Assembly (NCBI GenBank): GCA_964035545.1
Contig: OZ037768.1
Span: forward strand, 11,688,741-11,752,740
Direction of reading: 5' to 3'
DNA: 64,000 nt
DNA from: Bugula neritina
Lineage: Eukaryota; Animalia; Bryozoa
Notes under the pieces: model-generated
Databases searched by the model: none
Told to the model about the DNA's origin: nothing
Seen by the model: only the letters and a program-made list of their open reading frames with translations
In this document: positions 15,748 through 46,116 of the stretch, one piece after another
Layout: each line of letters begins with the position of its first letter
Numbering within the stretch: the stretch's first letter is position 1
Made by a program: the position numbers and the translations under genes

Positions 15748-15921
15748 CTCCTCCCTCACAAATTTAGACTTAAGAGTTATGGCTTGTACCAATCTGGCTG
15801 TCTGCGCTCTCTGGTTGGATAGCGCCTCTCATGAGGATGGACAATATTATTATCAGCTTGGGGTGTGTTGGGTACCACTGATTTGTTCATATTTGTAAAT
15901 GGAAGGCGAATTTGAAGCTGA

Positions 15922-18435: not shown

Positions 18436-18458
18436 TTCAAAATGATATGGTTGTATTT

Positions 18459-18476
18459 ATCCCACTTCTGACACCA
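18459..18476 (-). promoter_or_regulatory. Primer-binding site (tRNA-Leu type)
   Basis: Minus strand reads TGGTGTCAGAAGTGGGAT, 2 nt inside the 5' LTR. This is complementary to a tRNA-Leu 3' end (...ATCCCACTTCTGACACCA). Confidence 0.8.
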
Positions 18477-18478
18477 GT

Positions 18479-18785
18479 TGTTGTGTTCTTGTTATTTATG
18501 TTAAACAAGAGTAAACAGTAAGATTAAGCACGTATAAGTAAGATTGGCTGTAGAGTAGAATGTATGACTGTATTGTATTGAAGCTAACAAGTAACTGACA
18601 TAAAAATACATGTAGATAAACAGTGACAGAATAACAACTGGCTTGTATATTGATATGGCAAAAACTGTATATAATGAGTTTAAACAAATAGACATTAGAA
18701 TAAAAAGTAACCGAGCACATAAAATGTGGTATGTCATAATATGCATATATGTGGTGTATTGACAAGGCTAGTTCAATACATAGCA
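18479..18785 (-). repeat. 5' LTR of the Gypsy element
   Basis: Direct repeat of 15441..15747; the ORF-track translations of both copies are identical. Confidence 0.95.
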
Positions 18786-19532
18786 ACTATCCAAAGTAGC
18801 ATTGCAGTAATTAGACAGCATGCTCTATGGCTCTATAGCCTCTAAAGTCTAGTGGTGTTACAACCTGCAGCCACCAGTCAACACCAGTACTAACGTAAAT
18901 CCTCAATCTAAGTGTAATTCTACTATTTTGACTGCCTGCTTCTGCCAGTGAACGTTTTGTAAAATCTTTCATGTTTTAACTTACTCAGATAGTTTGAATA
19001 GATCCTATGTTAGATCAATCATTTTCAGATGACACATTTTCGAAAGTTGCTAAGCACAAATTAAAAAATTTCAAACAACAACCTTGATGTTACTATAAGC
19101 TGCGTGATCAAGCATTTTTATTGTTTATGATATCAATATAATTATCAATAGTTAGCTAAGCACACACATTGTACTAAGTGTTACAAATACTCATCTAGTT
19201 GATAGCTGCAATATTGTTTAGTGATAAAATGTTATAACTATGGTATGTATACAGAGGTGTACCATGTGCAGTAATGTTTTATGATTACCATTAATATAAT
19301 TATTCTTATGCTGAATAAAATTACTGAATGACTAAATGCACCTTAAAAACTCTGTAAGTTGAGGTGAATTGCATTACAGTAAGCAGTTATTGTGCACAAC
19401 TACCTAATTAGCTTTTTAATCTGTTTTGTTATTTTAGTCAACTATTTTTCCATGTTGCCATGAATGCTTATATAGTAATTTTTCAGATGTGCAAAATAAT
19501 TTTTTTGAATTAGCAATTGACATATAAAAGAT

Positions 19533-19558
19533 GAGGTAGGTGCAGTAATGGAGATATT
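19533..19558 (+). repeat. Left TIR
   Basis: 22/26 match to the reverse complement of 35574..35599 and 42341..42366; immediately preceded by TAAAAGAT. Confidence 0.85.
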
Positions 19559-19612
19559 GGAAATCACATATAAAAATTTACTATACAACATTTTCATTTT
19601 CTCCACATTATG

Positions 19613-22600
19613 TTATATATCTACACTTTTGGAGATTTGTTGAAAGTGTTAGACAGAGCCCTATCTGATTATTTTGTTAGATTGTTAGATTGTTGAAAAT
19701 CCAATGCTTTTATATATAAAAAAGTGTTGGAGATTTGTTGAAAGTGTTAGACAGACCCCTATCTGATTATTTTGTTAGATTGTTAGATTGTTGAAAATCC
19801 AATGCTTTTATATATAAAAAAGTGTTGAAGATTTGTTGAAAGTGTTAGACAGAGCCCTATCTGATTATTTTGTTAGATTGTTAGATTGTTGAATATTCAA
19901 TGCTTTTATATATAAAAAAGTGTTGGAGATTTGTTGAAAGTGTTAGACAGAGCCCTATCTGATTATTTTGTTAGATTGTTAGATTGTTGAAAATCCAATG
20001 CTTTTATATATAAAAAAGTGTTGGAGATTTGTTGAAAGTGTTAGACAGAGCCCTATCTGATTATTTTGTTAGATTGTTAGATTGTTGAAAATCCAATGCT
20101 TTTATATATAAAAAAGTGTTGAAGATTTGTTGAAAGTGTTAGACAGAGCCCTATCTGATTATTTTGTTAGATTGTTAGATTGTTGAAAATCCAATGCTTT
20201 TATATATAAAAAAGTGTTGAAGATTTGTTGAAAGTGTTAGACAGAGCCCTATCTGATTATTTTGTTAGATTGTTAGATTGTTGAATATTCAATGCTTTTA
20301 TATATAAAAAAGTGTTGGAGATTTGTTGAAAGTGTTAGACAGAGCCCTATCTGATTATTTTGTTAGATTGTTAGATTGTTGAAAATCCAATGCTTTTATA
20401 TATAAAAAAGTGTTGGAGATTTGTTGAAAGTGTTAGACAGAGCCCTATCTGATTATTTTGTTAGATTGTTAGATTGTTGAAAATCCAATGCTTTTATATA
20501 TAAAAAAGTGTTGAAGATTTGTTGAAAGTGTTAGACAGAGCCCTATCTGATTATTTTGTTAGATTGTTAGATTGTTGAAAATCCAATGCTTTTATATATA
20601 AAAAAGTGTTGGAGATTTGTTGAAAGTGTTAGACAGAGCCCTATCTGATTATTTTGTTAGATTGTTAGATTGTTGAAAATCCAATGCTTTTATATATAAA
20701 AAAGTGTTGAAGATTTGTTGAAAGTGTTAGACAGAGCCCTATCTGATTATTTTGTTAGATTGTTAGATTGTTGAAAATTCAATGCTTTTATATATAAAAA
20801 AGTGTTGGAGATTTGTTGAAAGTGTTAGACAGAGCCCTATCTGATTATTTTGTTAGATTGTTAGATTGTTGAAAATCCAATGCTTTTATATATAAAAAAG
20901 TGTTGGAGATTTGTTGAAAGTGTTAGACAGAGCCCTATCTGATTATTTTGTTAGATTGTTAGATTGTTGAAAATCCAATGCTTTTATATATAAAAAAGTG
21001 TTGGAGATTTGTTGAAAGTGTTAGACAGAGCCCTATCTGATTATTTTGTTAGATTGTTAGATTGTTGAAAATCCAATGCTTTTATATATAAAAAAGTGTT
21101 GAAGATTTGTTGAAAGTGTTAGACAGAGCCCTATCTAATTATTTTGTTAGATTGTTAGATTGTTGAAAATCCAATGCTTTTATATATAAAAAAGTGTTGG
21201 AGATTTGTTGAAAGTGTTAGACAGAGCCCTATCTGATTATTTTGTTAGATTGTTAGATTGTTGAAAATCCAATGCTTTTATATATAAAAAAGTGTTGAAG
21301 ATTTGTTGAAAGTGTTAGACAGAGCCCTATCTGATTATTTTGTTAGATTGTTAGATTGTTGAAAATCCAATGCTTTTATATATAAAAAAGTGTTGGAGAT
21401 TTGTTGAAAGTGTTAGACAGAGCCCTATCTGATTATTTTGTTAGATTGTTAGATTGTTGAAAATCCAATGCTTTTATATATAAAAAAGTGTTGGAGATTT
21501 GTTGAAAGTGTTAGACAGAGCCCTATCTGATTATTTTGTTAGATTGTTAGATTGTTGAAAATCCAATGCTTTTATATATAAAAAAGTGTTGGAGATTTGT
21601 TGAAAGTGTTAGACAGAGCCCTATCTGATTATTTTGTTAGATTGTTAGATTGTTGAAAATCCAATGCTTTTATATATAAAAAAGTGTTGAAGATTTGTTG
21701 AAAGTGTTAGACAGAGCCCTATCTGATTATTTTGTTAGATTGTTAGATTGTTGAAAATCCAATGCTTTTATATATAAAAAAGTGTTGGAGATTTGTTGAA
21801 AGTGTTAAACAGAGCCCTATCTGATTATTTTGTTAGATTGTTAGATTGTTGAAAATCCAATGCTTTTATATATAAAAAAGTGTTGAAGATTTGTTGAAAA
21901 TGTTAGACAGAGCCCTATCTGATTATTTTGTTAGATTGTTAGATTGTTGAAAATCCAATGCTTTTATATATAAAAAAGTGTTGGAGATTTGTTGAAAGTG
22001 TTAGACAGAGCCCTATCTGATTATTTTGTTAGATTGTTAGATTGTTGAAAATCCAATGCTTTTATATATAAAAAAGTGTTGAAGATTTGTTGAAAGTGTT
22101 AGACAGAGCCCTATCTGATTATTTTGTTAGATTGTTAGATTGTTGAAAATTCAATGCTTTTATATATAAAAAAGTGTTGGAGATTTGTTGAAAGTGTTAG
22201 ACAGAGCCCTATCTGATTATTTTGTTAGATTGTTAGATTGTTGAAAATCCAATGCTTTTATATATAAAAAAGTGTTGGAGATTTGTTGAAAGTGTTAGAC
22301 AGAGCCCTATCTGATTATTTTGTTAGATTGTTAGATTGTTGAAAATCCAATGCTTTTATATATAAAAAAGTGTTGAAGATTTGTTGAAAGTGTTAGACAG
22401 AGCCCTATCTGATTATTTTGTTAGATTGTTAGATTGTTGAATATTCAATGCTTTTATATATAAAAAAGTGTTGGAGATTTGTTGAAAGTGTTAGACAGAG
22501 CCCTATCTGATTATTCTGTTAGATTGTTAGATTGTTGAAAATTCAATGCTTTTATATATAAAAAAGTGTTGGAGATTTGTTGAAAGTGTTAGACAGAGCC

Positions 22601-24449
22601 CTATCTGATTATTTTGTTAGATTGTTAGATTGTTGAAAATCCAATGCTTTTATATATAAAAAAGTGTTGAAGATTTGTTGAAAGTGTTAGACAGAGCCCT
22701 ATCTGATTATTTTGTTAGATTGTTAGATTGTTGAAAATTCAATGCTTTTATATATCTACACTTTTGGAGATTTGTTGAAAGTGTTAGACAGAGCCCTATC
22801 TGATTATTTTGTTAGATTGTTAGATTGTTGAAAATCCAATGCTTTTATATATAAAAAAGTGTTGGAGATTTGTTGAAAGTGTTAGACAGAGCCCTATCTG
22901 ATTATTTTGTTAGATTGTTAGATTGTTGAAAATCCAATGCTTTTATATATAAAAAAGTGTTGAAGATTTGTTGAAAGTGTTAGACAGAGCCCTATCTGAT
23001 TATTTTGTTAGATTGTTAGATTGTTGAAAATCCAATGCTTTTATATATAAAAAAGTGTTGAAGATTTGTTGAAAGTGTTAGACAGAGCCCTATCTGATTA
23101 TTTTGTTAGATTGTTAGATTGTTGAAAATTCAATGCTTTTATATATAAAAAAGTGTTGGAGATTTGTTGAAAGTGTTAGACAGAGCCCTATCTGATTATT
23201 TTGTTAGATTGTTAGATTGTTGAAAATCCAATGCTTTTATATATAAAAAAGTGTTGAAGATTTGTTGAAACTGTTAGACAGAGCCCTATCTGATTATTTA
23301 GTTAGATTGTTAGATTGTTGAAAATTCAATGCTTTTATATATCTACACTTTTGGAGATTTGTTGAAAGTGTTAGACAGAGCCCTATCTGATTATTTTGTT
23401 AGATTGTTAGATTGTTGAAAATCCAATGCTTTTATATATAAAAAAGTGTTGAAGATTTGTTGAAAGTGTTAGACAGAGCCCTATCTGAATATTTTGTTAG
23501 ATTGTTAGATTGTTGAAAATTCAATGCTTTTATATATAAAAAAGTGTTGAAGATTTGTTGAAAGTGTTAGACAGTGCCCTATCTGATTATTTTGTTAGAT
23601 TGTTAGATTGTTGAAAATTCAATGCTTTTATATATAAAAAAGTGTTGGAGATTTGTTGAAAGTGTTAGACAGAGCCCTATCTGATTATTTTGTTAGATTG
23701 TTAGATTGTTGAAAATCCAATGCTTTTATATATAAAAAAGTGTTGGAGATTTGTTGAAAGTGTTAGACAGAGCCCTATCTGATTATTTTGTTAGATTGTT
23801 AGATTGTTGAAAATCCAATGCTTTTATATATAAAAAAGTGTTGAAGATTTGTTGAAAGTGTTAGACAGAGCCCTATCTGATTATTTTGTTAGATTGTTAG
23901 ATTGTTGAAAATTCAATGCTTTTATATATAAAAAAGTGTTGGAGATTTGTTGAAAGTGTTAGACAGAGCCCTATCTGATTATTTTGTTAGATTGTTAGAT
24001 GGTTGAAAATCCAATGCTTTTATATATAAAAAAGTGTTGAAGATTTGTTGAAAGTGTTAGACAGAGCCCTATCTGATTATTTTGTTAGATTGTTAGATTG
24101 TTGAAAATCCAATGCTTTTATATATAAAAAAGTGTTGAAGATTTGTTGAAAGTGTTAGGCAGAGCCCTATCTGATTATTTTGTTAGATTGTTAGATTGTT
24201 GAAAATTCAATGCTTTTATATATAAAAAAGTGTTGGAGATTTGTTGAAAGTGTTAGACAGAGCCCTATCTGATTATTTTGTTAGATTGTTAGATTGTTGA
24301 AAATCCAATGCTTTTATATATAAAAAAGTGTTGAAGATTTGTTGAAAGTGTTAGACAGAGCCCTATCAAATTATTTTGTTAGGTTGTTAGATTGTTGGAA
24401 ATTCAATGCTTTTATATATCTACACTTTCAGAGATTTGTTGAAAGTGTT
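19613..24449 (+). repeat. Left subterminal tandem array, 98-bp unit, ~49 copies
   Basis: Period 98 (e.g. 19631, 19729, 19827). Unit GGAGATTTGTTGAAAGTGTTAGACAGAGCCCTATCTGATTATTTTGTTAGATTGTTAGATTGTTGAAAATCCAATGCTTTTATATATAAAAAAGTGTT; near-identical copies with no spacers. Confidence 0.98.
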
Positions 24450-24641: not shown

Positions 24642-27442
24642 CTATTTCTTTATAAAATACATGGAGTTTTTTCTTGCTCCTTGTGTTATAGTTCCAAGTC
24701 CTATTTTTTCTGCCGCCATCAAAAAATCCTTGCATTCACTCGCAGTTTTGATTATTTTGTTCTGCTGCAGCGTCCTTGCTGTTATCACCTTCTCTTTTAG
24801 AGCATGCAACCTCTTTGTCGCATTGAGCTCCAAAAATTGTTCTTCGGTCATTGCCCCATAGTAACTGCTATTCTGCAAATTCATAACATATATTTCTTGA
24901 ACAGTCATTGGAAGGTTCCAAAGATGATTTGCTCCACATTTTCAATTGTTTTATATTTTAACAGCAGCTTCGCAACATATATCGTAATTGCTTTGTTCAT
25001 TATTGCAATTTTTTTTCGAAACACCAACCTCTTCAGCCTGTTCACCCTTTCTTTGAGGCATCCCAATGATATTTAATTTCCAACCATCAAGATGCCGCAT
25101 AACTGCAATTGCCTGTGTCATGCTGCTTGCTTGTACAATTCTAGTCCCTGGCACTCCTTCCTCAAGTGCATTGCTTGCCGCTTCCAGCACCATGGCCAAT
25201 CGTAGGACATAACCCTGCATAATTACAATCAAGCAACTATAAGTTTACACAATAAGGTGTTTACAAACATGTATGGATTGAGCTGCATCTATGATACTGA
25301 ATTTCATTAGAAAACAATTCTGGGTAAAAGAGATTCTCACACTTCATATTTTTAAAGCTTGTGACTTTGAGTTATCGTAACATAGTAATATTTGCAAATA
25401 TCTGTAGCGTTTTTTTGGTACATAGGCAATGAAATTTGTAAAAGCTAGCTTATAAAGTTTGTAAATTGCCGAAATTTTACTTACAGAAGATTTATTTACC
25501 AGTCCCAAAGACGGATCAGCTGCTGGGAGGTCAGACGTTTTTGCCTCCATCTCATCAAAATAATGTTCGAACAATGTTCCCGCTTCTGAATTTAGTTTAT
25601 AGAAGTTCTTCTGAAAAAGTGGCCTCACAAATATTAAATACTAAATAATGCAATACATACAATACATTTCAAGTCTCTTAACCAATTAAAATTTATAAAG
25701 ATCCAAATACATAATTTTAATGAAAATGAACTTTTTTACACACGATTCACTTGCATACAACTTATAACTTATCCAGTTTTAAAATCCAGCTACATGCCAA
25801 ACCAGTTACTAGCTATCTTGGCAGATTCAAATACATATAGACTTATACTATTCAGCATATATGCATTACTTAAAATTTTACCTCTGAACAATGGTGATTT
25901 TGAAACACCTTCAAAAAAAGATTGAACAGATCTTTCCCACTCTCCACTCGCTTTCCTATCTCTTGAAACTTTACATGGCGCTTTGTGGTGAAGCATATCA
26001 AATGGCGGTCTAAAAACCCGTCTATATCGCCTCTCTTCATGCGCTGGTTGAGCAGCCGAGGTTGAAGAAAGCCTAGAAGTTATATGAAAGATTTTGTATA
26101 AAGTTTCAACAGGTAAAATATATTATATACCATTGTACAACACTTCTTTTAATAAATAATAGAACAGTAGCCAATAAACTGCAAACTACAAGAAAAGGAA
26201 ATAAAGAAATTTTACATGTACACACTGAACTTTTGTGTACCTGTGTAATTTAATCTTGTTTCTTCTATTTCTTGTAGGCCTTGCTTGCTGTTTCGGGCCC
26301 AGCTCCCACCACCAGATAGTGTTAGCCAAACTCGTCTATCTAGGGAATCTGGTCTTCCCTTATTGTCTAGACATTCGAACAAGCCTTCAATCTCATCCAG
26401 TATATTAAGATAAGTTCCGTTATTGGTGGATAATTGCTCATGCAATTTTGCCATAGTGATTGTTTCATTTGAGCAGAAAAGGCGAGAGAGACATGGCTCA
26501 TTATCTATATATAAAGAAGTTCTATAGTAAATAGCAACAGAAAAATTTTTATCAGTAAAGTGAAAAAACAATGCTTATCTGAAAGAGCAGTTATTTTTTC
26601 CAGCAAAAGTTTAAACTGCAAATATTATGAAACATTGCATAACTACCTTGCGTTGAAAGTCCACTAAAACTTGTTTCAGCTTGTTCATTACACACAGTGT
26701 CTTTCACTCGCTTGAGGGCTGCCAACAGACACTTCAATGCCACTGTTTTTCGAGACCCTTTAGGTAACAGTAAATAAAAAATACTAATAATTTATCCTAA
26801 CATACAAGCGTGGGGGTTTGGGTAAAAAAAGCTCTAATCATGCTAAGCAAAAGACTGATAAATGGTTTTGAATAAAATTCTGTTCTCTTCATAATTTAGG
26901 CATTTTAATAGTCATTAGTTAATAAACATCAACATTCATGATATGTGATTATGATGTTTAACCTGGAGGAGCAGCCACTGCAGACCAAATTATATTTGGT
27001 TCAGTAAAGTTGATCTCATCCCTATGAGTTGAGACAGTAGAAATCCCCATCAATCCAGACACAATTGTGAGAACCGGTAGCAACAGCATCGAGATGTTGA
27101 CAGAGGCTTCTTTTGAAGTATCATCTAATAGCTTTACCAGCGGAGTGTTGGGGAGAACTTCCCATAATGGATCAGGATTTACCTGAAGTAAGTAAAATAT
27201 GGTTTAAATGATAAATTATTAAATAAAAATACAATTGGTCATTTATAATTTCCTAGAAATGTTATTCCTTACCAAGATATAGAAGAATAGTTGTATAAAT
27301 ATAATAATGCAAATCCATAGCTACTAATAACAATTCAAATACTTACATGTTCAGAAGTATCTGTAATAGTAATTTCAGTGCTTTCTACTGACATAGCTTC
27401 ACAGTTGAGATTGGTTATATCAGTATCTGCGTTAGTGTCCAT
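24642..27442 (-). CDS. Spliced DUF3987/YfjI-like P-loop NTPase (putative helicase), ~8 exons, ~480 aa
   Basis: Approximate exons 27442-27347, 27182-26963, 26757-26648, 26504-26241, 26072-25882, 25610-25485, 25213-25029, 24872-24642. They join in phase to give EPNIIWSAVAAPPGSRKT (Walker A-like), LNILDEIEG (Walker B), WLTLSGGGSW, NYTGFLQP, DGFLDRHLI and GYVLRLAMVL. The last intron is inferred, because it skips two in-frame stops. Confidence 0.75.
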
Positions 27443-27521: not shown

Positions 27522-27912
27522 TGTCTAAACTGACAGCATGACTCTAACAATATTGCAACTACTAAAAATGGTTTTGTCTTATATACTAATCCATTTGATA
27601 AACATCATATTGTGTTGCAAGAAGTATTATTTCACATTTTAGCTATTTTGGGGTAGGATCTCACTATTTCAAAGAAGTGGGCTGAAGTAAACAAACACCG
27701 TGTGACATCACAGCTGATGCAAGCATAACTGCTGACTATGAATCATTCTACATGCGTAGCTACTGTTTTGGGGTAGTAATTAAAGAAGCATTAGGTTGAC
27801 TACTGGCAGCTAGTGGTTATATAGGCTAATTGAAGGTTGATGACATTGTGATTGTGCGTGATGGTACTACGAGTTATAATTCCTGTAAACATCCTATTTC
27901 ATAACATTACAC
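27522..27912 (-). repeat. Internal inverted repeat, left arm (~390 bp; candidate promoter/5' region)
   Basis: Reverse complement of 29275..29660 with a few substitutions and 2-bp indels; ends 80 bp upstream of the NTPase ATG. Confidence 0.92.
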
Positions 27913-28152
27913 TCGACCCTTTAATTTCTATCTATTCACTTAGAGGGAATTAACAATTATATTATTATGCATTTAAGATACTAAGCTAAAATACTAATAT
28001 AGGTATGCATGCAAAGGTTATGGGGTAAATAGGTAAATTAATTTGTGGATAGGCCTATCTAAATATTTGAGTGGAGCTAGTCTCACACCTTTACTGTTCA
28101 ACTCTGTAGTTGCTAGTTGCACTTTTACCTTACGAATTAAGTCATCTCAGTT

Positions 28153-29240
28153 TTATGTGTTTCTATCTTTACTTACACATTTGTCTTTACTTAGCCTGTA
28201 ATATTCATCTGAAAATGACCCTTTTTGTACCCACTGCAGTATAAGATGTTTAGCATCTGTCAAGTCAATAATTGTGAGTCTGGGAGTTATGCTACCTTTA
28301 TGCTTTACCAATCTTTTTCTTTTTGGGGTGATACACGCCAAAGTGGGGAATGTACCACTGATGTTTGCTTGCCTCACAATTTGTAGGTACCAATTCTGCA
28401 TCGCCATTGTTTATTATGTCTGCCATAAATGCCACGTAATCTGTTTCATATTTCTGGTCTTTAAGCATTTTAGTTTTGAGGATATCAAGTCTGTGCACAG
28501 CTATTTGTCTATTGTCTGGTAATTGTGGCTTAGCATTTTTAAATGACAGTGGCATGCTGTAATAATTGTCTTTTCTTTGTTTAATATTGTTGCGCATGTT
28601 ATCTAAAAACTTGGCATCTTCCTGTGACATTTTATGAGTAGCAATGCACTTTGTGTCAGTATAATCTTGCTGTAGGACATTCAAGATATCTGAACTCAAG
28701 TTCTGCTCATGAGCCATAGCCCTATTGCATGTGGGAAATGAGTTTGTTTCATGCTTACCACTATTGCCTACAATACACCATCCTAGAGGTGTTCTCAGAG
28801 CAAAGGGATCATTGATTGCAAGGCCTATTTTAGTTTCAAGTGGCACTAAAGCTCTGGAGCTGTCATACCCTATAAAAATTCATATCTCTATATCTAAACC
28901 TTGTGGTATTTTACCTGCAATGCATTTAAGGTGTGGCCATCTATTGGCAATTTCTGGTGTGGGTATGTGCTGCTTGTTAATTAGAATGCTGTCCGTACTG
29001 TAAGTCTATCCTACTTGTATCTGCTCATGCATGTTCAGTCCTCTAATAGTCAAGTTATTGTACACCTTACACTTCATTTCCAAGTTGTCAGCTGTCATTG
29101 TTGTTAGTTTAAGAGAAACTGGTTTGCTTGTAGCTGTTTATAGCTTACTAACAACTTGGTTGGTTACAAATGCGGTATCTGACATGCTATCTAAAAGTGC
29201 ATAAGTTAGCATTTCCTCAAGATTTACAGCACAACTATAC
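28153..29240 (-). pseudogene. Degenerate BEL/Pao retrotransposon pol fragment
   Basis: TYALLDSMSD (protease), PFALRTPLGWCIVG, YYSMPLSFK..LPDNR, WYIPHFGVYHPKK (RT start), then a jump to a post-RNase H-like segment (LTDAKHLILQWVQ). Contains stops and frameshifts; no LTRs seen. Confidence 0.85.
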
Positions 29241-29274
29241 CAACACTTTATTATCTCTATCTCTTACAAGGAGG

Positions 29275-29660
29275 GTGTAATGTTACGAAATAGGATGTTT
29301 ACAGGAATTATAACTCGTAGTACCATCACGCACAATCACAATGTCATCAACCTTCAATTAGCCTATATAACCACTAGCTGCCAGTAGTCAACCTAATGCT
29401 TCTTTAATTACTACCCCAAAACAGTAGCTACGCATGTAGAATGATTCATAGTCAGCAGTTATGCTTGCATCAGCTGTGATGTCACAGGTGTTTGTTTACT
29501 TCAGCCCACTTCTTTGAAACAGTAAGATCCTACCCCAAAATAGCTAAAATGTGAAACCATACCTCTTACAACGCAATAATGTTTATCAAATGGATTAGTA
29601 TATAAGACAAAACCATTTTTAGTAGTTGCAATATTGTTAGTCATGCTGTCAGTTTAGACA
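29275..29660 (+). repeat. Internal inverted repeat, right arm
   Basis: Reverse complement of 27522..27912. Followed by likely 5'UTR exons (donors at ~29764 and ~30201) of the transposase gene. Confidence 0.92.
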
Positions 29661-29780
29661 ACATTTTTTAAGTTTATGTAAGACTACCAAAGAGTAGCAT
29701 TATTTGAAAGACTGTGCAAAGCCACAGCATCAACATAACAGTAGATTAGGAGAGAGAGAAAAGGTAACAAACTTCTATTT

Positions 29781-29785
<5 letters not shown>

Positions 29786-29823
<38 letters not shown>
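29786..29823. repeat. (TA)19 microsatellite
   Basis: Read directly; it is (TA)20 in the duplicate at 36551..36590. Confidence 0.95.
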
Positions 29824-29827
<4 letters not shown>

Positions 29828-30888
29828 GATTACATTTTTATACTATAAAGTTTCAATAATATGGACTGTAGTTACATGCTAGGTTGAATTGTTATTTCAT
29901 GCTGCTATCTACAATTTATGATATACATTGCTAGTGCCTTTACATACATACTTATTATACTACATACATTTTGTTTGCGTTAATATCATTATGCCTTATG
30001 TTGTATCATTATTATTTTAGTTTTTACAGTCAGTATTTGATCAACATTGGTGATTCAAATAAACTCTGATCACGGCTAAAACCCTCCCTATTCCTAGTCA
30101 GGCTGTATAAGCTAGAGTGTCACTCTAAAGCAAGAATCATAGCAAAGAGTGTCATTCTATAGAGGGAGATCTCTGCCTGATTACATCACATTACGTAGAG
30201 GTAGGTTAAGTAAAGGGCAAAATTAGAAACTTACCATAAGAAGTCGTTTTCTTAAACCGAATTAGTGAACTTAGGCTATCTCAATTTTTCCACTGATCGT
30301 AATGCTCTAAATGTACATGTGAGTATTTGTCTGTATATATATGTATATACAACAATATTTTTAAAATTAGTATTCACACAAATGTATATTATTTCAAGTT
30401 TTTGCATAATGTTTTTTTACTCTAAATGAACTTCACACCCAAATTTAGTATGAGTTAAAAATACTTAAGCTACCTATCTCAATTATTTTACTGTTGCGCA
30501 GCAATATTGCTATATTTTGCTTTCAATCTTAGAATTAGGACATGTACATTAAAAGTTTTTACTTGATATTTCAATTGTGCAATTCATTCAATATACTTTT
30601 AAAGTTATATATAATTTGCTGGATGTACATCTATATTTTTTTATAAGACAAGTTGTTGTATTTCTAGTATAATTAATTGAAATGCATCTGACAAATGTAT
30701 AGTTGTAGTTGAAGTTTAAAAAAAAATTTGTGATCTAATGAAAAAGTTTGTAGTGGTAATAGTTTTCTTTGCCACATATATAAATAGTTCTACAGTATAA
30801 TCATACGTTACATAACTACTTTCAAAAAGACACTTCAACATATTTCTAACTATATGAGTATCATTTTATAGATACTACAAACATTGAC

Positions 30889-33369
30889 ATGCCTCAGTTT
30901 ACCCTGATAGCTGGAATAATGCCATTGTTTGCTTATGCATACTTTGCTGTCCCAGAGGGAACTCCTTTCAGATGGAAGAAAATTACCAGTTACATTAAAG
31001 ACCATTTGGCCAAGATTCAAAGCTATGGAGAGCTTACAAAAATAACTGTGAGTGTTTCTGTTGATTTAGAAACTAGCTTACGACAATATAATTGATTCAC
31101 TAGAAATTTAATAATTTTGTATTTGAAGTTTTTCTAAATATTTTTTGAGAGATGTAATGAAAAAAAAGAAATGTTGTAAATTAACTGAATATCATACACC
31201 GTTGTTAGTAAAATATCATCGCACAACAGTAAATACGATAACTTTGGTTAAATGCTTAGTTTAAAGTAATGAGATATTGGCAGAAACTCTAGGTAATCGC
31301 ATGGCTTCCTGTAGAAAGCTAGTCACATATGGAAATTTTTGAAAACACCCTTTTAATGTTTATGAATTGGATAAGAGGCAATGTGTATTACAAAATAAAA
31401 TGTTTTAAATTTAAAATTAGGTTGGAGCTGGAAAGCATAAAGAGAGTAACTATGAGTGCAGCAGTTTTTACAAAGAAGTGTTCCGGATCATTGGGGAAGA
31501 TAATTTGATGGTGTACAACCTTCCTTTAAAATCTCATATGGTGTTTTTACCAAAAAAGAAGCTATGTTGTGACCAGGTCGGTTAATATTTAAATCATTAA
31601 AAGTATTTCATTAGTGTATATGCGTATCTGGTATTATATATTATGAATAGCTAGCAGAGTTGGGGTAGTTGTAATTGGTTGTAATTAATTACATTTACTA
31701 AAGTAATTGAATGTAATTTGTAATTGATGTATAAGAATTTGATTGTAATTGTAATTAATAAAGAATTGCTAATGTTTTTGAATTTAATGTCATATTTATC
31801 AACCTATTTTTTACTGTTAAGAACAAAGAAGGTTTTCAGTTGTCAAAATTGCCCCAGAAATGAGATTAAATAACATTTAGTACTCTTTTGTTAGGACAAA
31901 TAATCTTGTAATTGTAATTAATTACATTACCATGTAATTGACTCCAACCTTGATAGCTAGAGTAGTAAAAAACCTTTGTACCAGTGTATGTTATCAACTT
32001 TTCACTAATGTAGATTATGAAGATAGACAAAGATCGGCCATCGGAAGTTGTAGTGTATACACGAGATGGTATGTCAACAGCACAAGTGTATCACACTACG
32101 TGCAGCAAATGTAAGACTGCATATTTTCCAACTTATGAAGAAACCAACACCAGCAGAACATTCTACACAACATCAAAGGACGATAAAATTATGATGACAA
32201 GCCGGTCAACAGCCTTTACATTGGATTACCTTAAAGAAGTGCTAGTTGATATTCAACTAGGTCGCAGCTTTGGGGAGCTCTGTGAGCGATACAGTAAGCT
32301 GTATGGCTCAGATGAGTACAGAGGAGAAGTTTTTAAAACCAGACTAGAAGATGTTTATTTTATAGCCCAGCTATTAAAATACTTCAATAACAATGTCAGC
32401 TTCTCAAAAGATAATATAGCTAACCGGCTTGCCATAGATGACGTGTGTGATGAAGCAGCTGAAATAATATTCGCACAGAACAGTAAATGGGCTGCTCACA
32501 ATTGTAAAATAAAAGGTTGCTCAGAGGGATTTGTTATGTGTGATGGCAATGAAAAAATAAACAGAAGAATTTGTGCTGCTCCTAAACAACATTTTAAGTT
32601 AGGGAAGGGAATGCCCAACACTATAGGTTGCTGCCCAAACACACCAACTTTAGGAGGAAAAAACAAATCCTCGTCGGTATATTGCAAAGATCATCAATTT
32701 TTAGATTCAGACATTGTTGACAAACACATCATAGTGACAATTAATGTGCCAGATCAAGCTGTATCATCTAGGATTGTTGATGTGAGTAAAGATGTGGTAA
32801 AGATGCAAGAAGAAGATGAAAATATTGGCTGCAAAAAAACAAAGAATATAACTAGATTTCATCAAAAAACAGCTGGGATTATGGCCATTGTCAAGCCCTG
32901 TGGGATAATCATAGATCATCGGGAGATGTACACTTGTGAATCGGCAAGCCAACTCTTTGTCCAGTTGTTGAAGTTAATAGATGATCATGGAGACAAGTTG
33001 AAATATGTGGGCTATGACAGGGCATGTGAATTTCAGCCATTTGTGGAGCGACTGCATAAGAACGGAAATGCTGGTGCTGCTGAGCTCAGCAAGTTGAAAT
33101 ATCTGGTAGACAGATTTCACATCAGAGGTCATACAAAAGCAGAGTGTGACATTTCCCAAGCCTCATGCAAATACCATCCAGATTTGCCGATCTTCACGGA
33201 AATAAGTGCAGCAAACACAGAATGTGCAGAGCAAACATTCTCCTGGCTAAAGAAGTATAAGCATACCGTTAAATACATGACTGCGGCAAAATTTCGGTTT
33301 TTCCTATACTCAATAATAGAGGACCGGAATACAGAAATCCACCAACAGCAAAAAGGAAAATTTCTTTGA
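30889..33369 (+). CDS. KDZ (Kyakuja-Dileera-Zisupton) transposase, CxC5/CxC6-like, 3 coding exons, ~556 aa
   Basis: Exons 30889-31047, 31421-31576 and 32014-33369, all phase 0. Cys clusters P..LCC..VYTRDG..CSKCKTAYFPTY and HNCKIKGC, then VMCDG, KPCGIII..E..ES, YDRAC, VDRFH..GH...C and NTECAEQTFSWL, which is the KDZ catalytic pattern. No disabling stops. Confidence 0.85.
31655..31952. mobile_element. hAT-type MITE in transposase intron 2
   Basis: 8-bp TSD ATAGCTAG (31647-31654 / 31953-31960). Termini CAGAGTTGGGGT vs reverse complement CAAGGTTGGAGT; internal GTAATT repeats. Confidence 0.8.
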
Positions 33370-33558
33370 AATAACACTTATTTTTATTTCTATATAGTTT
33401 AAATTTTTTTACTTTACCATAATTTTACTTATTATTATCTGAATTCCTTGTGAAAAAAACATAAATGTTAACAATTCTGACAGCTCAACATGTAAAATAT
33501 ATTTAAAACATTGTCTTAACATTTCCAACAAGCAAGTCAACATAATTGAAAATAGCTT

Positions 33559-35439
33559 TGTCTAACACTTTCAACAAATATCTGAAAGTGTTGATATATA
33601 AAAGCATTGAATTTCCAACAATCTAACAATCTAACAAAATAATCAGATAGGGCTCTGTCTAACACTTTCAACAAATCTCCAACACTTTTTTATATATAAA
33701 AGCATTGAATTTTCAACAATCTAACAATCTAACAGAATAATCAGATAGGGCTCTGTCTAACACTTTCAACAAATCTCCAACACTTTTTTATATATAAAAG
33801 CATTGAATTTTCAACAATCTAACAATCTAACAAAATAATCAGATAGGGCTCTGTCTAACACTTTCAACAAATCTCCAACACTTTTTTTATATATAAAGCA
33901 TTGGATTTTCAACAATCTAACAATCTAACAAAATAATCAGATAGGGCTCTGTCTAACACTTTCAACAAATCTCCAAAAGTGTAGATATATAAAAGCATTG
34001 AATTTCCAACAATCTAACAATCTAACAAAATAATCAGATAGGGCTCTGTCTAACACTTTCAACAAATCTTCAACACTTTTTTATATATAAAAGCATTGGA
34101 TTTTCAACAATCTAACAAAATAATCAAATAGGGCTCTGTCTAACACTTTCAACAAATCTCCAACACTTTTTTATATATAAAAGCATTGGATTTTCAACAA
34201 TCTAACAATCTAACAAAATAATCAGATAGGGCTCTGTCTAACACTTTCAACAAATCTCCAACACTTTTTTATATATAAAAGCATTGGATTTTCAACAATC
34301 TAACAATCTAACAAAATAATCAGATAGGGCTCTGTCTAACACTTTCAACAAATCTTCAACACTTTTTTATATATAAAAGCATTGGATTTTCAACAATCTA
34401 ACAATCTAACAAAATAATCAGATAGGGCTCTGTCTAACACTTTCAACAAATCTCCAAAAGTGTAGATATATAAAAGCATTGAATTTTCAACAATCTAACA
34501 AAATAATCAGATAGGGCTCTGTCTAACACTTTCAACAAATCTCCAACACTTTTTTATATATAAAAGCATTGAATTTTCAACAATCTAACAATCTAACAAA
34601 ATAATCAGATAGGGCTCTGTCTAACACTTTCAACAAATCTCCAACACTTTTTTTATATATAAAGCATTGGATTTTCAACAATCTAACAATCTAACAAAAT
34701 AATCAGATAGGGCTCTGTCTAACACTTTCAACAAATCTCCAACACTTTTTTTATATATAAAGCATTGGATTTTCAACAATCTAACAATCTAACAAAATAA
34801 TCAGATAGGGCTCTGTCTAACACTTTCAACAAATCTTCAACACTTTTTTATATATAAAAGCATTGGATTTTCAACAATCTAACAATCTAACAAAATAATC
34901 AGATAGGGCTCTGTCTAACACTTTCAACAAATCTCCAACACTTTTTTATATATAAAAGCATTGAATTTTCAACAATCTAACAATCTAACAAAATAATCAG
35001 ATAGGGCTCTGTCTAACACTTTCAACAAATCTCCAACACTTTTTTATATATAAAAGCATTGAATATTCAACAATCTAACAATCTAACAAAATAATCAGAT
35101 AGGGCTCTGTCTAACACTTTCAACAAATCTCCAAAAGTGTAGATATATAAAAGCATTGAATTTTCAACAATCTAACAATCTAACAAAATAATCAAATAGA
35201 GCTCTGTCTAACACTTTCAACAAATCTCCAACACTTTTTTATATATAAAAGCATTGGATTTTCAACAATCTAACAATCTAACAAAATAATCAGATAGGGC
35301 TCTGTCTAACACTTTCAACAAATCTCCAACACTTTTTTATATATAAAAGCATTGAATTTTCAACAATCTAACAATCTAACAAAATAATCAGATAGGGCTC
35401 TGTCTATCACTTTCAACAAATCTCCAACAATCTAACAAA
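33559..35439 (-). repeat. Right subterminal array 1: inverted 98-bp unit, ~19 copies
   Basis: Reverse complement of the left-array unit; a few units lack one 8-bp CAATCTAA. Confidence 0.97.
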
Positions 35440-35573
35440 TATGATACACTAGTCAGCCCTTGTCTAACAGTTGTATCCATAGCTCTCTACAATTCCAAAT
35501 ATGTTGGTAGGACTCATCTAACACAAGTCAAAAGCTTTCAACAAAAATGCTATTCAGTGAGGAATTTTTAGTC

Positions 35574-35599
35574 AAAATCTCCATTTCTGCACCTAACTG
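35574..35599 (-). repeat. Right TIR, internal copy
   Basis: AAAATCTCCATTTCTGCACCTAACTG, joined directly to TTCAAGTGGC, which is the sequence from 28835. Confidence 0.85.
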
Positions 35600-36545
35600 T
35601 TCAAGTGGCACTAAAGCTCTGGAGCTGTCATACCCTATAAAAATTCATATCTCTATATCTAAACCTTGTGGTATTTTACCTGCAATGCATTTAAGGTGTG
35701 GCCATCTATTGGCAATTTCTGGTGTGGGTATGTGCTGCTTGTTAATTAGAATGCTGTCCGTACTGTAAGTCTATCCTACTTGTATCTGCTCATGCATGTT
35801 CAGTCCTCTAATAGTCAAGTTATTGTACACCTTACACTTCATTTCCAAGTTGTCAGCTGTCATTGTTGTTAGTTTAAGAGAAACTGGTTTGCTTGTAGCT
35901 GTTTATAGCTTACTAACAACTTGGTTGGTTACAAATGCGGTATCTGACATGCTATCTAAAAGTGCATAAGTTAGCATTTCCTCAAGATTTACAGCACAAC
36001 TATACCAACACTTTATTATCTCTATCTCTTACAAGGAGGGTGTAATGTTACGAAATAGGATGTTTACAGGAATTATAACTCGTAGTACCATCACGCACAA
36101 TCACAATGTCATCAACCTTCAATTAGCCTATATAACCACTAGCTGCCAGTAGTCAACCTAATGCTTCTTTAATTACTACCCCAAAACAGTAGCTACGCAT
36201 GTAGAATGATTCATAGTCAGCAGTTATGCTTGCATCAGCTGTGATGTCACAGGTGTTTGTTTACTTCAGCCCACTTCTTTGAAACAGTAAGATCCTACCC
36301 CAAAATAGCTAAAATGTGAAACCATACCTCTTACAACGCAATAATGTTTATCAAATGGATTAGTATATAAGACAAAACCATTTTTAGTAGTTGCAATATT
36401 GTTAGTCATGCTGTCAGTTTAGACAACATTTTTTAAGTTTATGTAAGACTACCAAAGAGTAGCATTATTTGAAAGACTGTGCAAAGCCACAGCATCAACA
36501 TAACAGTAGATTAGGAGAGAGAGAAAAGGTAACAAACTTCTATTT

Positions 36546-36594
<49 letters not shown>

Positions 36595-37655
36595 GATTAC
36601 ATTTTTATACTATAAAGTTTCAATAATATGGACTGTAGTTACATGCTAGGTTGAATTGTTATTTCATGCTGCTATCTACAATTTATGATATACATTGCTA
36701 GTGCCTTTACATACATACTTATTATACTACATACATTTTGTTTGCGTTAATATCATTATGCCTTATGTTGTATCATTATTATTTTAGTTTTTACAGTCAG
36801 TATTTGATCAACATTGGTGATTCAAATAAACTCTGATCACGGCTAAAACCCTCCCTATTCCTAGTCAGGCTGTATAAGCTAGAGTGTCACTCTAAAGCAA
36901 GAATCATAGCAAAGAGTGTCATTCTATAGAGGGAGATCTCTGCCTGATTACATCACATTACGTAGAGGTAGGTTAAGTAAAGGGCAAAATTAGAAACTTA
37001 CCATAAGAAGTCGTTTTCTTAAACCGAATTAGTGAACTTAGGCTATCTCAATTTTTCCACTGATCGTAATGCTCTAAATGTACATGTGAGTATTTGTCTG
37101 TATATATATGTATATACAACAATATTTTTAAAATTAGTATTCACACAAATGTATATTATTTCAAGTTTTTGCATAATGTTTTTTTACTCTAAATGAACTT
37201 CACACCCAAATTTAGTATGAGTTAAAAATACTTAAGCTACCTATCTCAATTATTTTACTGTTGCGCAGCAATATTGCTATATTTTGCTTTCAATCTTAGA
37301 ATTAGGACATGTACATTAAAAGTTTTTACTTGATATTTCAATTGTGCAATTCATTCAATATACTTTTAAAGTTATATATAATTTGCTGGATGTACATCTA
37401 TATTTTTTTATAAGACAAGTTGTTGTATTTCTAGTATAATTAATTGAAATGCATCTGACAAATGTATAGTTGTAGTTGAAGTTTAAAAAAAAATTTGTGA
37501 TCTAATGAAAAAGTTTGTAGTGGTAATAGTTTTCTTTGCCACATATATAAATAGTTCTACAGTATAATCATACGTTACATAACTACTTTCAAAAAGACAC
37601 TTCAACATATTTCTAACTATATGAGTATCATTTTATAGATACTACAAACATTGAC

Positions 37656-40136
37656 ATGCCTCAGTTTACCCTGATAGCTGGAATAATGCCATTGTTTGCT
37701 TATGCATACTTTGCTGTCCCAGAGGGAACTCCTTTCAGATGGAAGAAAATTACCAGTTACATTAAAGACCATTTGGCCAAGATTCAAAGCTATGGAGAGC
37801 TTACAAAAATAACTGTGAGTGTTTCTGTTGATTTAGAAACTAGCTTACGACAATATAATTGATTCACTAGAAATTTAATAATTTTGTATTTGAAGTTTTT
37901 CTAAATATTTTTTGAGAGATGTAATGAAAAAAAAGAAATGTTGTAAATTAACTGAATATCATACACCGTTGTTAGTAAAATATCATCGCACAACAGTAAA
38001 TACGATAACTTTGGTTAAATGCTTAGTTTAAAGTAATGAGATATTGGCAGAAACTCTAGGTAATCGCATGGCTTCCTGTAGAAAGCTAGTCACATATGGA
38101 AATTTTTGAAAACACCCTTTTAATGTTTATGAATTGGATAAGAGGCAATGTGTATTACAAAATAAAATGTTTTAAATTTAAAATTAGGTTGGAGCTGGAA
38201 AGCATAAAGAGAGTAACTATGAGTGCAGCAGTTTTTACAAAGAAGTGTTCCGGATCATTGGGGAAGATAATTTGATGGTGTACAACCTTCCTTTAAAATC
38301 TCATATGGTGTTTTTACCAAAAAAGAAGCTATGTTGTGACCAGGTCGGTTAATATTTAAATCATTAAAAGTATTTCATTAGTGTATATGCGTATCTGGTA
38401 TTATATATTATGAATAGCTAGCAGAGTTGGGGTAGTTGTAATTGGTTGTAATTAATTACATTTACTAAAGTAATTGAATGTAATTTGTAATTGATGTATA
38501 AGAATTTGATTGTAATTGTAATTAATAAAGAATTGCTAATGTTTTTGAATTTAATGTCATATTTATCAACCTATTTTTTACTGTTAAGAACAAAGAAGGT
38601 TTTCAGTTGTCAAAATTGCCCCAGAAATGAGATTAAATAACATTTAGTACTCTTTTGTTAGGACAAATAATCTTGTAATTGTAATTAATTACATTACCAT
38701 GTAATTGACTCCAACCTTGATAGCTAGAGTAGTAAAAAACCTTTGTACCAGTGTATGTTATCAACTTTTCACTAATGTAGATTATGAAGATAGACAAAGA
38801 TCGGCCATCGGAAGTTGTAGTGTATACACGAGATGGTATGTCAACAGCACAAGTGTATCACACTACGTGCAGCAAATGTAAGACTGCATATTTTCCAACT
38901 TATGAAGAAACCAACACCAGCAGAACATTCTACACAACATCAAAGGACGATAAAATTATGATGACAAGCCGGTCAACAGCCTTTACATTGGATTACCTTA
39001 AAGAAGTGCTAGTTGATATTCAACTAGGTCGCAGCTTTGGGGAGCTCTGTGAGCGATACAGTAAGCTGTATGGCTCAGATGAGTACAGAGGAGAAGTTTT
39101 TAAAACCAGACTAGAAGATGTTTATTTTATAGCCCAGCTATTAAAATACTTCAATAACAATGTCAGCTTCTCAAAAGATAATATAGCTAACCGGCTTGCC
39201 ATAGATGACGTGTGTGATGAAGCAGCTGAAATAATATTCGCACAGAACAGTAAATGGGCTGCTCACAATTGTAAAATAAAAGGTTGCTCAGAGGGATTTG
39301 TTATGTGTGATGGCAATGAAAAAATAAACAGAAGAATTTGTGCTGCTCCTAAACAACATTTTAAGTTAGGGAAGGGAATGCCCAACACTATAGGTTGCTG
39401 CCCAAACACACCAACTTTAGGAGGAAAAAACAAATCCTCGTCGGTATATTGCAAAGATCATCAATTTTTAGATTCAGACATTGTTGACAAACACATCATA
39501 GTGACAATTAATGTGCCAGATCAAGCTGTATCATCTAGGATTGTTGATGTGAGTAAAGATGTGGTAAAGATGCAAGAAGAAGATGAAAATATTGGCTGCA
39601 AAAAAACAAAGAATATAACTAGATTTCATCAAAAAACAGCTGGGATTATGGCCATTGTCAAGCCCTGTGGGATAATCATAGATCATCGGGAGATGTACAC
39701 TTGTGAATCGGCAAGCCAACTCTTTGTCCAGTTGTTGAAGTTAATAGATGATCATGGAGACAAGTTGAAATATGTGGGCTATGACAGGGCATGTGAATTT
39801 CAGCCATTTGTGGAGCGACTGCATAAGAACGGAAATGCTGGTGCTGCTGAGCTCAGCAAGTTGAAATATCTGGTAGACAGATTTCACATCAGAGGTCATA
39901 CAAAAGCAGAGTGTGACATTTCCCAAGCCTCATGCAAATACCATCCAGATTTGCCGATCTTCACGGAAATAAGTGCAGCAAACACAGAATGTGCAGAGCA
40001 AACATTCTCCTGGCTAAAGAAGTATAAGCATACCGTTAAATACATGACTGCGGCAAAATTTCGGTTTTTCCTATACTCAATAATAGAGGACCGGAATACA
40101 GAAATCCACCAACAGCAAAAAGGAAAATTTCTTTGA
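37656..40136 (+). CDS. KDZ transposase, second identical copy
   Basis: Exons 37656-37814, 38188-38343 and 38781-40136; protein identical to 30889..33369. Confidence 0.85.
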
Positions 40137-40325
40137 AATAACACTTATTTTTATTTCTATATAGTTTAAATTTTTTTACTTTACCATAATTTTACTTATT
40201 ATTATCTGAATTCCTTGTGAAAAAAACATAAATGTTAACAATTCTGACAGCTCAACATGTAAAATATATTTAAAACATTGTCTTAACATTTCCAACAAGC
40301 AAGTCAACATAATTGAAAATAGCTT

Positions 40326-42206
40326 TGTCTAACACTTTCAACAAATATCTGAAAGTGTTGATATATAAAAGCATTGAATTTCCAACAATCTAACAATCTA
40401 ACAAAATAATCAGATAGGGCTCTGTCTAACACTTTCAACAAATCTCCAACACTTTTTTATATATAAAAGCATTGAATTTTCAACAATCTAACAATCTAAC
40501 AGAATAATCAGATAGGGCTCTGTCTAACACTTTCAACAAATCTCCAACACTTTTTTATATATAAAAGCATTGAATTTTCAACAATCTAACAATCTAACAA
40601 AATAATCAGATAGGGCTCTGTCTAACACTTTCAACAAATCTCCAACACTTTTTTTATATATAAAGCATTGGATTTTCAACAATCTAACAATCTAACAAAA
40701 TAATCAGATAGGGCTCTGTCTAACACTTTCAACAAATCTCCAAAAGTGTAGATATATAAAAGCATTGAATTTCCAACAATCTAACAATCTAACAAAATAA
40801 TCAGATAGGGCTCTGTCTAACACTTTCAACAAATCTTCAACACTTTTTTATATATAAAAGCATTGGATTTTCAACAATCTAACAAAATAATCAAATAGGG
40901 CTCTGTCTAACACTTTCAACAAATCTCCAACACTTTTTTATATATAAAAGCATTGGATTTTCAACAATCTAACAATCTAACAAAATAATCAGATAGGGCT
41001 CTGTCTAACACTTTCAACAAATCTCCAACACTTTTTTATATATAAAAGCATTGGATTTTCAACAATCTAACAATCTAACAAAATAATCAGATAGGGCTCT
41101 GTCTAACACTTTCAACAAATCTTCAACACTTTTTTATATATAAAAGCATTGGATTTTCAACAATCTAACAATCTAACAAAATAATCAGATAGGGCTCTGT
41201 CTAACACTTTCAACAAATCTCCAAAAGTGTAGATATATAAAAGCATTGAATTTTCAACAATCTAACAAAATAATCAGATAGGGCTCTGTCTAACACTTTC
41301 AACAAATCTCCAACACTTTTTTATATATAAAAGCATTGAATTTTCAACAATCTAACAATCTAACAAAATAATCAGATAGGGCTCTGTCTAACACTTTCAA
41401 CAAATCTCCAACACTTTTTTTATATATAAAGCATTGGATTTTCAACAATCTAACAATCTAACAAAATAATCAGATAGGGCTCTGTCTAACACTTTCAACA
41501 AATCTCCAACACTTTTTTTATATATAAAGCATTGGATTTTCAACAATCTAACAATCTAACAAAATAATCAGATAGGGCTCTGTCTAACACTTTCAACAAA
41601 TCTTCAACACTTTTTTATATATAAAAGCATTGGATTTTCAACAATCTAACAATCTAACAAAATAATCAGATAGGGCTCTGTCTAACACTTTCAACAAATC
41701 TCCAACACTTTTTTATATATAAAAGCATTGAATTTTCAACAATCTAACAATCTAACAAAATAATCAGATAGGGCTCTGTCTAACACTTTCAACAAATCTC
41801 CAACACTTTTTTATATATAAAAGCATTGAATATTCAACAATCTAACAATCTAACAAAATAATCAGATAGGGCTCTGTCTAACACTTTCAACAAATCTCCA
41901 AAAGTGTAGATATATAAAAGCATTGAATTTTCAACAATCTAACAATCTAACAAAATAATCAAATAGAGCTCTGTCTAACACTTTCAACAAATCTCCAACA
42001 CTTTTTTATATATAAAAGCATTGGATTTTCAACAATCTAACAATCTAACAAAATAATCAGATAGGGCTCTGTCTAACACTTTCAACAAATCTCCAACACT
42101 TTTTTATATATAAAAGCATTGAATTTTCAACAATCTAACAATCTAACAAAATAATCAGATAGGGCTCTGTCTATCACTTTCAACAAATCTCCAACAATCT
42201 AACAAA
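40326..42206 (-). repeat. Right subterminal array 2 (duplicate), ~19 x 98 bp
   Basis: Copy of 33559..35439. Confidence 0.97.
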
Positions 42207-42340
42207 TATGATACACTAGTCAGCCCTTGTCTAACAGTTGTATCCATAGCTCTCTACAATTCCAAATATGTTGGTAGGACTCATCTAACACAAGTCAAAA
42301 GCTTTCAACAAAAATGCTATTCAGTGAGGAATTTTTAGTC

Positions 42341-42366
42341 AAAATCTCCATTTCTGCACCTAACTG
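42341..42366 (-). repeat. Right TIR (outer)
   Basis: Followed by the TSD TAAAAGAT at 42367-42374. Confidence 0.87.
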
Positions 42367-43037
42367 TAAAAGATGCGAAGGTGGGTAGTAAAACCACATA
42401 ACAACTCGTGTACCTGGTAAGGATGCTACAAGCTAAGTGTTATAGTATGACATTATTCATCTCAGAAAATTACCAGTTTATGTGAACTACTCATGTAATT
42501 TCTATAATGCAATAAAGGAAACTATATTATCTTTCTCTGCTGGTGACTTTTTTAGTCTTGTTGATGTGTTATCACTATGTTTTATATTATGTACAACATG
42601 TGATTGGGGATTTCCTTTTATCTTTAGCCAATAACATGGAATGTTATTATCAGTTATTTATATAATTGTTCCAACTACATGGGTCAGGATAAGGTTACAA
42701 TAGGCATTAATGGTTAAGGAAAATTCAAGTTATTATCAGCTGACAAAGCACTAGTCATGGAACTATTCACTGGAAAGTTGAGCATGACTATTTGGGTTTT
42801 ACAATACTGTTTATCATTTGTTTTTAGAACATGCGCCTTCCAAAGGGATATAAAGCTGGCTGCTGGACAAAGTGTTTTCCAAATAGCAGTTCGTAGCTTC
42901 AGGATAAGTTTTGTTTTTATTGCAGATGAAAGTTTAGAGCAGAAGTTCGTCAACTGGAAAGCTATATAAAATATTACACTTACAGATTGCTAGAGTGAAT
43001 AGATCAACATATTGTATAGTATTACATCTTGGTTATC

Positions 43038-46000: not shown

Positions 46001-46116
46001 TGGAAGAAAGGAGAAAAATGGCTCTGCAGGACAATAATAACAATGATCTCTCTCTGTCGATAACTATTAATAGACCTGTTCCAGTAAAAAAAAGTTTCTG
46101 TAGAAATCTTTGCTAA
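43038..46116 (+). CDS. Divergent Rab-like small GTPase, 3 exons
   Basis: Exons 43038-43296, ~44807-44915 and 45783-46116. G1 GNVGVGKS, G3 WDTAGQERY, RabF-like ITSNYYRDAQG, CFDITD, G4 GTKAD, G5 EVSC, C-terminus CRNLC. Confidence 0.88.
44016..44338. mobile_element. hAT/Charlie-like MITE in Rab intron 1
   Basis: 8-bp TSD TTATAGTG (44008-44015 / 44339-44346). Termini CAGAGGTGTTCAAC vs reverse complement CAGGGCTGTCCAAC. Confidence 0.82.

Follow-up and report, generated by a model that had tools for sequence, protein, structure and literature searches.

A KDZ element with captured LTRs

The window, a 64,000-bp stretch of the Bugula neritina genome (contig OZ037768.1), harbours a young KDZ (Zisupton-like, CxC5) DNA transposon with a DUF3987 gene, the right part of which is present twice (Table 1). 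A search of the whole assembly (216 Mb, 321 contigs) with both ends of the element yielded five further copies of 5.0-19.1 kb, all of which start with GAGG, end with CTG at the same base and are flanked by perfect 8-bp target site duplications (TSDs). Altogether, six copies have 8-bp TSDs and 27-bp imperfect terminal inverted repeats (TIRs). As the five other TSD-flanked copies share the end base, the right terminus deduced in the sequence-only reading is confirmed independently of the junction described below, and the possibility that the true end lies elsewhere is ruled out. Comparison of the six TSDs gave no usable consensus for a target preference. A locus from another sample (L072) has matching ends and an 8-bp TSD.

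Table 1. Features of the transposon and of its duplicated part (window coordinates).
Feature	Position	Strand	Remarks
Left TSD copy (TAAAAGAT)	19525..19532	.	8 bp
Left TIR	19533..19559	+	starts GAGG; 23/27 bases match right TIR
Left subterminal array	19629..24419	+	98-bp unit, 48.9 copies
DUF3987-like spliced gene	24642..27442 (putative limits)	-	second gene of the element; weak Pfam DUF3987 on two exons
First 391 bases of captured LTR	27522..27912	-	points at DUF3987 gene, oriented by comparison with standalone copies; 96.7% inverted match to 29275-29660
LTR-retrotransposon internal fragment	27913..29219	-	contains target site; 95% match to at least 8 standalone elements
Duplicated unit B1	28835..35599	+	6,765 bp
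Inferred 8-bp target site (TTCAAGTG)	28835..28842	+	opening bases of the unit; length from the family's 8-bp TSDs
Full captured LTR	29276..30161	+	sense towards transposase; second copy ~36041-36928
Upstream transposase exons	30094 or earlier-30200, 30872-31047, ~31459-31576	+	second copy at +6767
KDZ transposase main coding exon, copy 1	32017..33369	+	450 aa, CxC5 + KDZ
Inner right subterminal array	33559..35429	-	19.3 units, opposite orientation to left array
Inner right TIR	35573..35599	-	without TSD
Junction	35599..35600		last base of right TIR fused to internal position 28835
Duplicated unit B2	35600..42366	+	6,767 bp
KDZ transposase main coding exon, copy 2	38784..40136	+	identical to copy 1
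Outer right subterminal array	40326..42196	-	unit-for-unit same as inner array
Outer right TIR	42340..42366	-	ends CTG
Right TSD copy (TAAAAGAT)	42367..42374	.	8 bp

The left arrays of the window element, L058 and L060 comprise 49, 60 and 48 units, respectively, in very different orders. Two of these elements differ by just 5 core SNPs, and their right arrays are nearly colinear. Internally deleted copies are also present in the family (C2, C4b). A TSD-flanked copy of 11.8 kb at C2:21862097-21873874 (L064/L065) consists almost entirely of the 98-bp array (109 + 8 units) and has no genes. Furthermore, miniature elements of ~300 bp (L015, L018, L021, L030, L041 and L044) bear the ends of the family within similar, CACAA.AT-like flanks, which suggests that they spread within another repeat or prefer that target.

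Two features of KDZ transposons are found here, namely TIRs with 8-bp TSDs and a transposase domain in which acidic and histidine residues are conserved. The transposase ORF matches the Pfam families PF18718 (39.7 bits, cut-off 26.9, E 6e-10) and PF18758 (37.3 bits, cut-off 26.6, E 3e-9), and its residues D176, D334, H368 and E405 are invariant across 13 homologues. Within the KDZ group, Zisupton and Dileera have TIRs and an 8-bp TSD, and Kyakuja has a 7-bp TSD and no TIR (PMC12730594); the ends found here would thus fit Zisupton or Dileera better than Kyakuja. Two transposase introns, 30201-30871 and 31577-32013, have GT..AG borders and are skipped in the contigs of a spliced public run (X8), which we guess to be RNA and whose source copy is ~2-3% diverged from that of the window. 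The exons were examined singly rather than joined, and the position of the middle-intron acceptor is approximate. The transposase gene of each unit is intact and apparently spliced.

As for the DUF3987 gene, a tblastx search over 25545-27170 matched two loci of other samples in which a DUF3987 gene lies close to the KDZ gene. At L072, the KDZ and DUF3987 genes are arranged head to head, with subterminal arrays and the same unequal G/C terminal bases. Our literature search found no paper tying DUF3987 or CxC5 to such elements. Accessory SWIM, SAP and Ulp1 domains are a feature of fish Zisupton; none was found in the ORFs scanned with Pfam.

Between the two genes lie captured pieces of a retrotransposon. 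On sequence grounds, 29276-30161 is the LTR of an LTR retrotransposon: it starts with TG and recurs as direct repeats flanking standalone elements, 4.6-7.3 kb apart, as exemplified by the same-strand pair C8:1048384-1049228 and C8:1055587-1056431. Its 3' end in the window copy is not CA, and the boundary of the LTR family falls at 36928/36929 in contigs. From its motifs, the internal fragment is putatively BEL/Pao-like, a label that a Pfam search of 27913..29219 did not confirm. The retrotransposon piece containing the target site is present in all four long copies of the transposon, and the capture is old, since the left LTR arm is also found in an 89% identical 5-kb copy on C4. The mirrored LTRs (27522-30161) face the two divergent transposon genes. 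In the X8 contigs, the final 68 bases of the LTR are shared with the first transposase exon; the LTR may serve as the transposase promoter. Because position 28835 is upstream of the LTR, each unit contains the LTR, the exons and an intact transposase ORF.

Other repeats are found in and around the window. To the left of the transposon, at a distance of 750 bp, is a Gypsy-type LTR element (15433-18785, minus strand) whose LTRs are 99% identical and which lacks ~1.4 kb compared with a 4.7-kb copy with identical LTRs. The latter sits in another KDZ copy (L061/L062, C5), at the position of window 28802-28806, ~30 bp from the junction target site; the 28802-28835 region is possibly an accessible spot. 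In the same C5 copy (L062), the transposase ORF is broken, at the position of window 33277-33283, by another LTR element of 4.3 kb, the LTRs of which are nearly identical. Pieces of an older host duplication, 84-91% identical, are found at 268-4572 and 54645-63635 and include oxysterol-binding-protein exons (3103, 4000, 62287). The window also contains a Ras-family exon (45736-46116), a 780-bp repeat in two copies that are 98% identical (10491-11269 and 57171-57950) and a tandem array of 63-bp units containing open frames (54056-54604).

The duplication junction and its authenticity

Self-BLAST of the window aligns 28835-35600 with 35600-42367 as a direct tandem repeat, with 99.97% identity, no mismatch and one gap. 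The gap of 2 bp, (TA)19 at 29786 against (TA)20 at 36551, is the sole difference between the units. Together with the comparison of the unit edges, these data bear out, in the assembly, the 6.77-kb tandem duplication with a junction exactly at the right TIR that had been proposed from the sequence, as well as the TA run as the only difference noticed between the copies. The order L-A-B-R-B-R (L and R, element ends; B, duplicated part; A, the part between L and B) also holds, with a TSD on the outer R only: TAAAAGAT is found at 19525-19532 and 42367-42374, whereas the bases that follow the inner right end at 35599 are TTCAAGTG. The element sizes given previously, 16,067 and 22,834 bp, are correct, and the existence of two possible mobile forms of these sizes is supported. 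The junction occurs once in the assembly, and the 22.8-kb form has thus not visibly spread.

The units share no homology leftward of 28835/35600 and a single base (T) rightward, which leaves at most 1 bp of microhomology at an otherwise exact junction. The lack of homology rules out unequal crossing-over between repeats. Neither homology nor a second element is found at the other breakpoint (28835). Both outer TSD copies are perfect, and the flanks of the element show no excision footprint. A random breakpoint within the 16-kb element has a chance of ~2 in 10,000 of landing at most 1 bp from the right end. As this homology-free breakpoint coincides with the base at which the element is cleaved, participation of the transposase in the origin of the duplication is very probable.

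The two units also reveal the source of the donor. Against the nearest copy, C5:10983288-11000354, the window element shows 5 SNPs in 9 kb of core, in addition to changes in TA length and in the arrays. The SNPs at 30697, 31887 and 33093 are found in both units and are absent from the three other long copies; the two right arrays agree in the order of their 19 units, and the nearest copy (C5a) has 18 units. Since the units share private SNPs and array order, a donor from another assembled locus is ruled out, and donor and target must have been the same locus, or an identical copy that is no longer assembled. The duplication is also younger than these SNPs. With 0 substitutions in ~6,725 bp, the divergence between the units is below 0.045% (95% bound), which puts the age of the duplication under ~44,000 generations, given an assumed mutation rate of 5e-9. 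The very recent activity suggested by the sequence-only reading is thus supported as regards a recent origin, by the absence of substitutions over ~6.7 kb and the identical order of array units. In contrast, the predicted doubling of transposase dosage applies to this locus but not to the genome, where intact transposase ORFs increase from 3 to 4. The DUF3987 gene is outside the duplicated unit and stays single.

A chimeric read or a false duplication might have created the junction in the assembly, the chromosome having one 16-kb element. The near identity of the units, which differ by one TA unit, is typical of false duplications, and assembly graphs branch at repeat ends. Nineteen public runs include part of the stretch compared, 35431-40250 (4,820 letters), all as contigs. 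In the four runs that were aligned, no listed contig spans 35599/35600, although contigs omit minority branches and the bearing of this result is weak. Contigs that extend leftward to 35600 and whose unaligned ends are shown run on into normal A-type sequence. The best run has the alleles shared by the two older copies at seven diagnostic sites; as it carries these alleles, it must represent another colony, or a colony in which the window copy is a minority. No empty site or alternative haplotig was found in the assembly. A misjoin, however, needs shared sequence or reads bearing the adjacency; the overlap is at most 1 bp, and the adjacency is found nowhere else in the assembly. Moreover, a random chimera would reach the exact end only ~2 times in 10,000, and the bases past the junction are of the type embedded in the transposon, from which the standalone retroelement type differs at ~12 of 360 bases. 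We thus regard an artefact as improbable. The embedded-type bases past the junction also rule out the combination of an insertion into a standalone retroelement with a misjoin.

Possible routes to the duplication

The simplest route is a one-step transposition involving sister chromatids, with a hybrid element as intermediate, which we consider plausible but somewhat short of probable. After replication, the KDZ transposase would pair the right end on one chromatid with the left end on its sister. Both paired ends would be released from the flanking DNA and would integrate at 28835 of the sister copy, with the 8-bp stagger of the family. Fusion of the right end with what lies distal to 28835 in the sister element would yield flank-L-A-B-R-B-R-flank with both outer TSDs intact, and the left end would close on its own A segment to form a ~9.3-kb circle, which would be lost. 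The hybrid-element chemistry, the use of the sister chromatid and the single step are drawn by analogy, the pairing model being borrowed from P and Ac/Ds elements. The exact end, a microhomology of at most 1 bp, the lack of a footprint, the intact transposases and the splicing of a related copy support such a hybrid-end route. A single event of this kind would most simply account for all the features, and two other transposase routes yield the same final sequence. Accordingly, the sister-chromatid insertion put forward earlier stands as regards a donor at the same locus, but a single-step reaction is not established. The search for a reciprocal product, a left TIR behind TTCAAGTG, had been put forward as a test of this proposal. 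No such A-to-L junction was found in the assembly, but its absence tests nothing, because the model releases L-A as a lost circle, which leaves no chromosomal trace.

Alternatively, the whole element was cut and pasted into its sister copy at 28835, in the same orientation (L-A-L-A-B-R-B-R), before one 9.3-kb L-A repeat was lost by recombination or collapsed in the assembly. This would require only standard transposition and local hopping, and IS variants are known to arise by self-insertion followed by recombination of the nested homologous parts (PMC12065110). The half to be lost does recombine, as indicated by left arrays that are reshuffled between copies 5 SNPs apart in the 9 kb core. In addition, the left end of the family abuts internal transposase-intron sequence at an older locus on C7. 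Nevertheless, two events would have to take place in a very short time, given 0 substitutions in 6.7 kb, the 6.77-kb repeat would have to persist while the 9.3-kb repeat disappears, and the A-to-L junction is missing from the assembly. We find this nested self-insertion rather unlikely. At the C7 locus (L046:1501-1748, C7:11299534-11299781) and at L039, an inverted left end adjoins sequence of transposase intron 1 (window 30442 onward, 87%). On C7, this intron sequence belongs to an older, broken relative, and another worn left end is found at a distance of 12.7 kb. The locus is possibly the product of an older end-to-internal joining. As a second, mirror-image case it was not upheld, the end being inverted and backed by single-copy DNA.

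The two remaining routes start with an excision. In the first, an excised copy integrates into itself, giving a B-R circle that carries this junction and that re-enters by homologous crossover or serves as a gap-repair template. A single crossover of such a circle would give exactly L-A-B-R-B-R. Autointegration of Sleeping Beauty and piggyBac generates two deletion circles and increases with element size (PMC3952818), and the element is 16 kb long here. However, this route takes two steps, and we give it little credence. Germ-line re-entry of a circle is expected to be rare.

The second route is gap repair. When interrupted, such repair gives rise to internally rearranged P, Ac/Ds and mariner elements. 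Here, synthesis from one broken end would have run through the entire sister element as far as its right end, cut or transposase-bound, and synthesis from the other through R-B only. The joining of the copied ends through the 1-bp microhomology would make the event transposase-triggered without strand transfer. That microhomology and the internally deleted copies C2 and C4b are consistent with gap repair, but synthesis must have halted on the exact last base without entering the TSD, and there is no filler DNA. Such repair mostly deletes sequence. This explanation seems very improbable to us.

It is tempting to speculate that the structure records, for the first time, a hybrid-end (sister-chromatid) transposition carried out by a KDZ transposase, in an element whose two genes both read from mirrored captured LTRs and whose family is sufficiently active for testing; we would call this possible rather than likely. 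If the left end and the inner right end were to excise, a one-ended, immobile transposase gene would remain with its LTR. Should the hybrid-end reading be true, a one-ended transposase gene with its own promoter would lead directly to an immobile source of transposase.

Relation to known systems

Our literature search found no report of such self-joining for KDZ transposons and nothing on the mechanism of KDZ transposases. If reads confirm the junction, a KDZ transposase is able to attach an element end to another copy of the same element, and hence has no strict target immunity. Such joining, if real, parallels that of P, Ac/Ds and Sleeping Beauty. The young family with intact, spliced transposase genes would then provide material for a first assay, and the duplication would exemplify a route by which giant elements become larger and stable transposase genes are left behind. 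As a single event of a known class, known from the assembly alone, it carries moderate weight.

The element resembles KDZ/Zisupton transposons by its KDZ domain, TIRs, 8-bp TSD and large size (PMC12730594). It differs from them by its CxC5-type enzyme (~600 aa in full-length homologues), its divergent DUF3987 gene, its terminal bases (G on the left, C on the right), its long subterminal arrays of 98-bp units and its captured LTRs.

As for the duplication, autointegration of Sleeping Beauty and piggyBac similarly joins an element end to an internal site of the same element and is favoured by large size (PMC3952818), and nested IS-within-IS forms recombine into new variants (PMC12065110). Those cases are lost circles or laboratory bacterial variants, whereas the present one is chromosomal and TSD-flanked, with both genes intact.

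In P hybrid element insertion, left and right ends from sister chromatids are inserted with an 8-bp stagger, producing duplications bounded by an element end. The products are mainly flanking duplications or deletions with marker recombination. The model proposed here would share the sister-chromatid ends and the 8-bp stagger, but the target in the Bugula element is internal.

In maize, alternative transposition of Ac/Ds creates duplications bounded by element ends, with an inner end lacking a TSD as their signature (PMC3744419); the same paper cites P-element hybrid insertion. The reversed-ends and sister-chromatid events described for Ac/Ds (PMC3744419) likewise give a direct tandem duplication. 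One of its breakpoints coincides exactly with an element end, the other lacks homology, the inner end has no TSD of its own, and the target is thought to be the sister chromatid. In contrast, the maize reaction uses two separate elements and a hAT enzyme and duplicates flanking host DNA, whereas here a single element with a KDZ enzyme has an internal target, and nothing outside it is altered. The reciprocal product, with the TSD partner that is the hallmark of the maize events, was recovered there (PMC3744419) and not here. By analogy, the Bugula structure would be a duplication of a kind known from maize and flies, made by a KDZ enzyme and with the element itself as the target.
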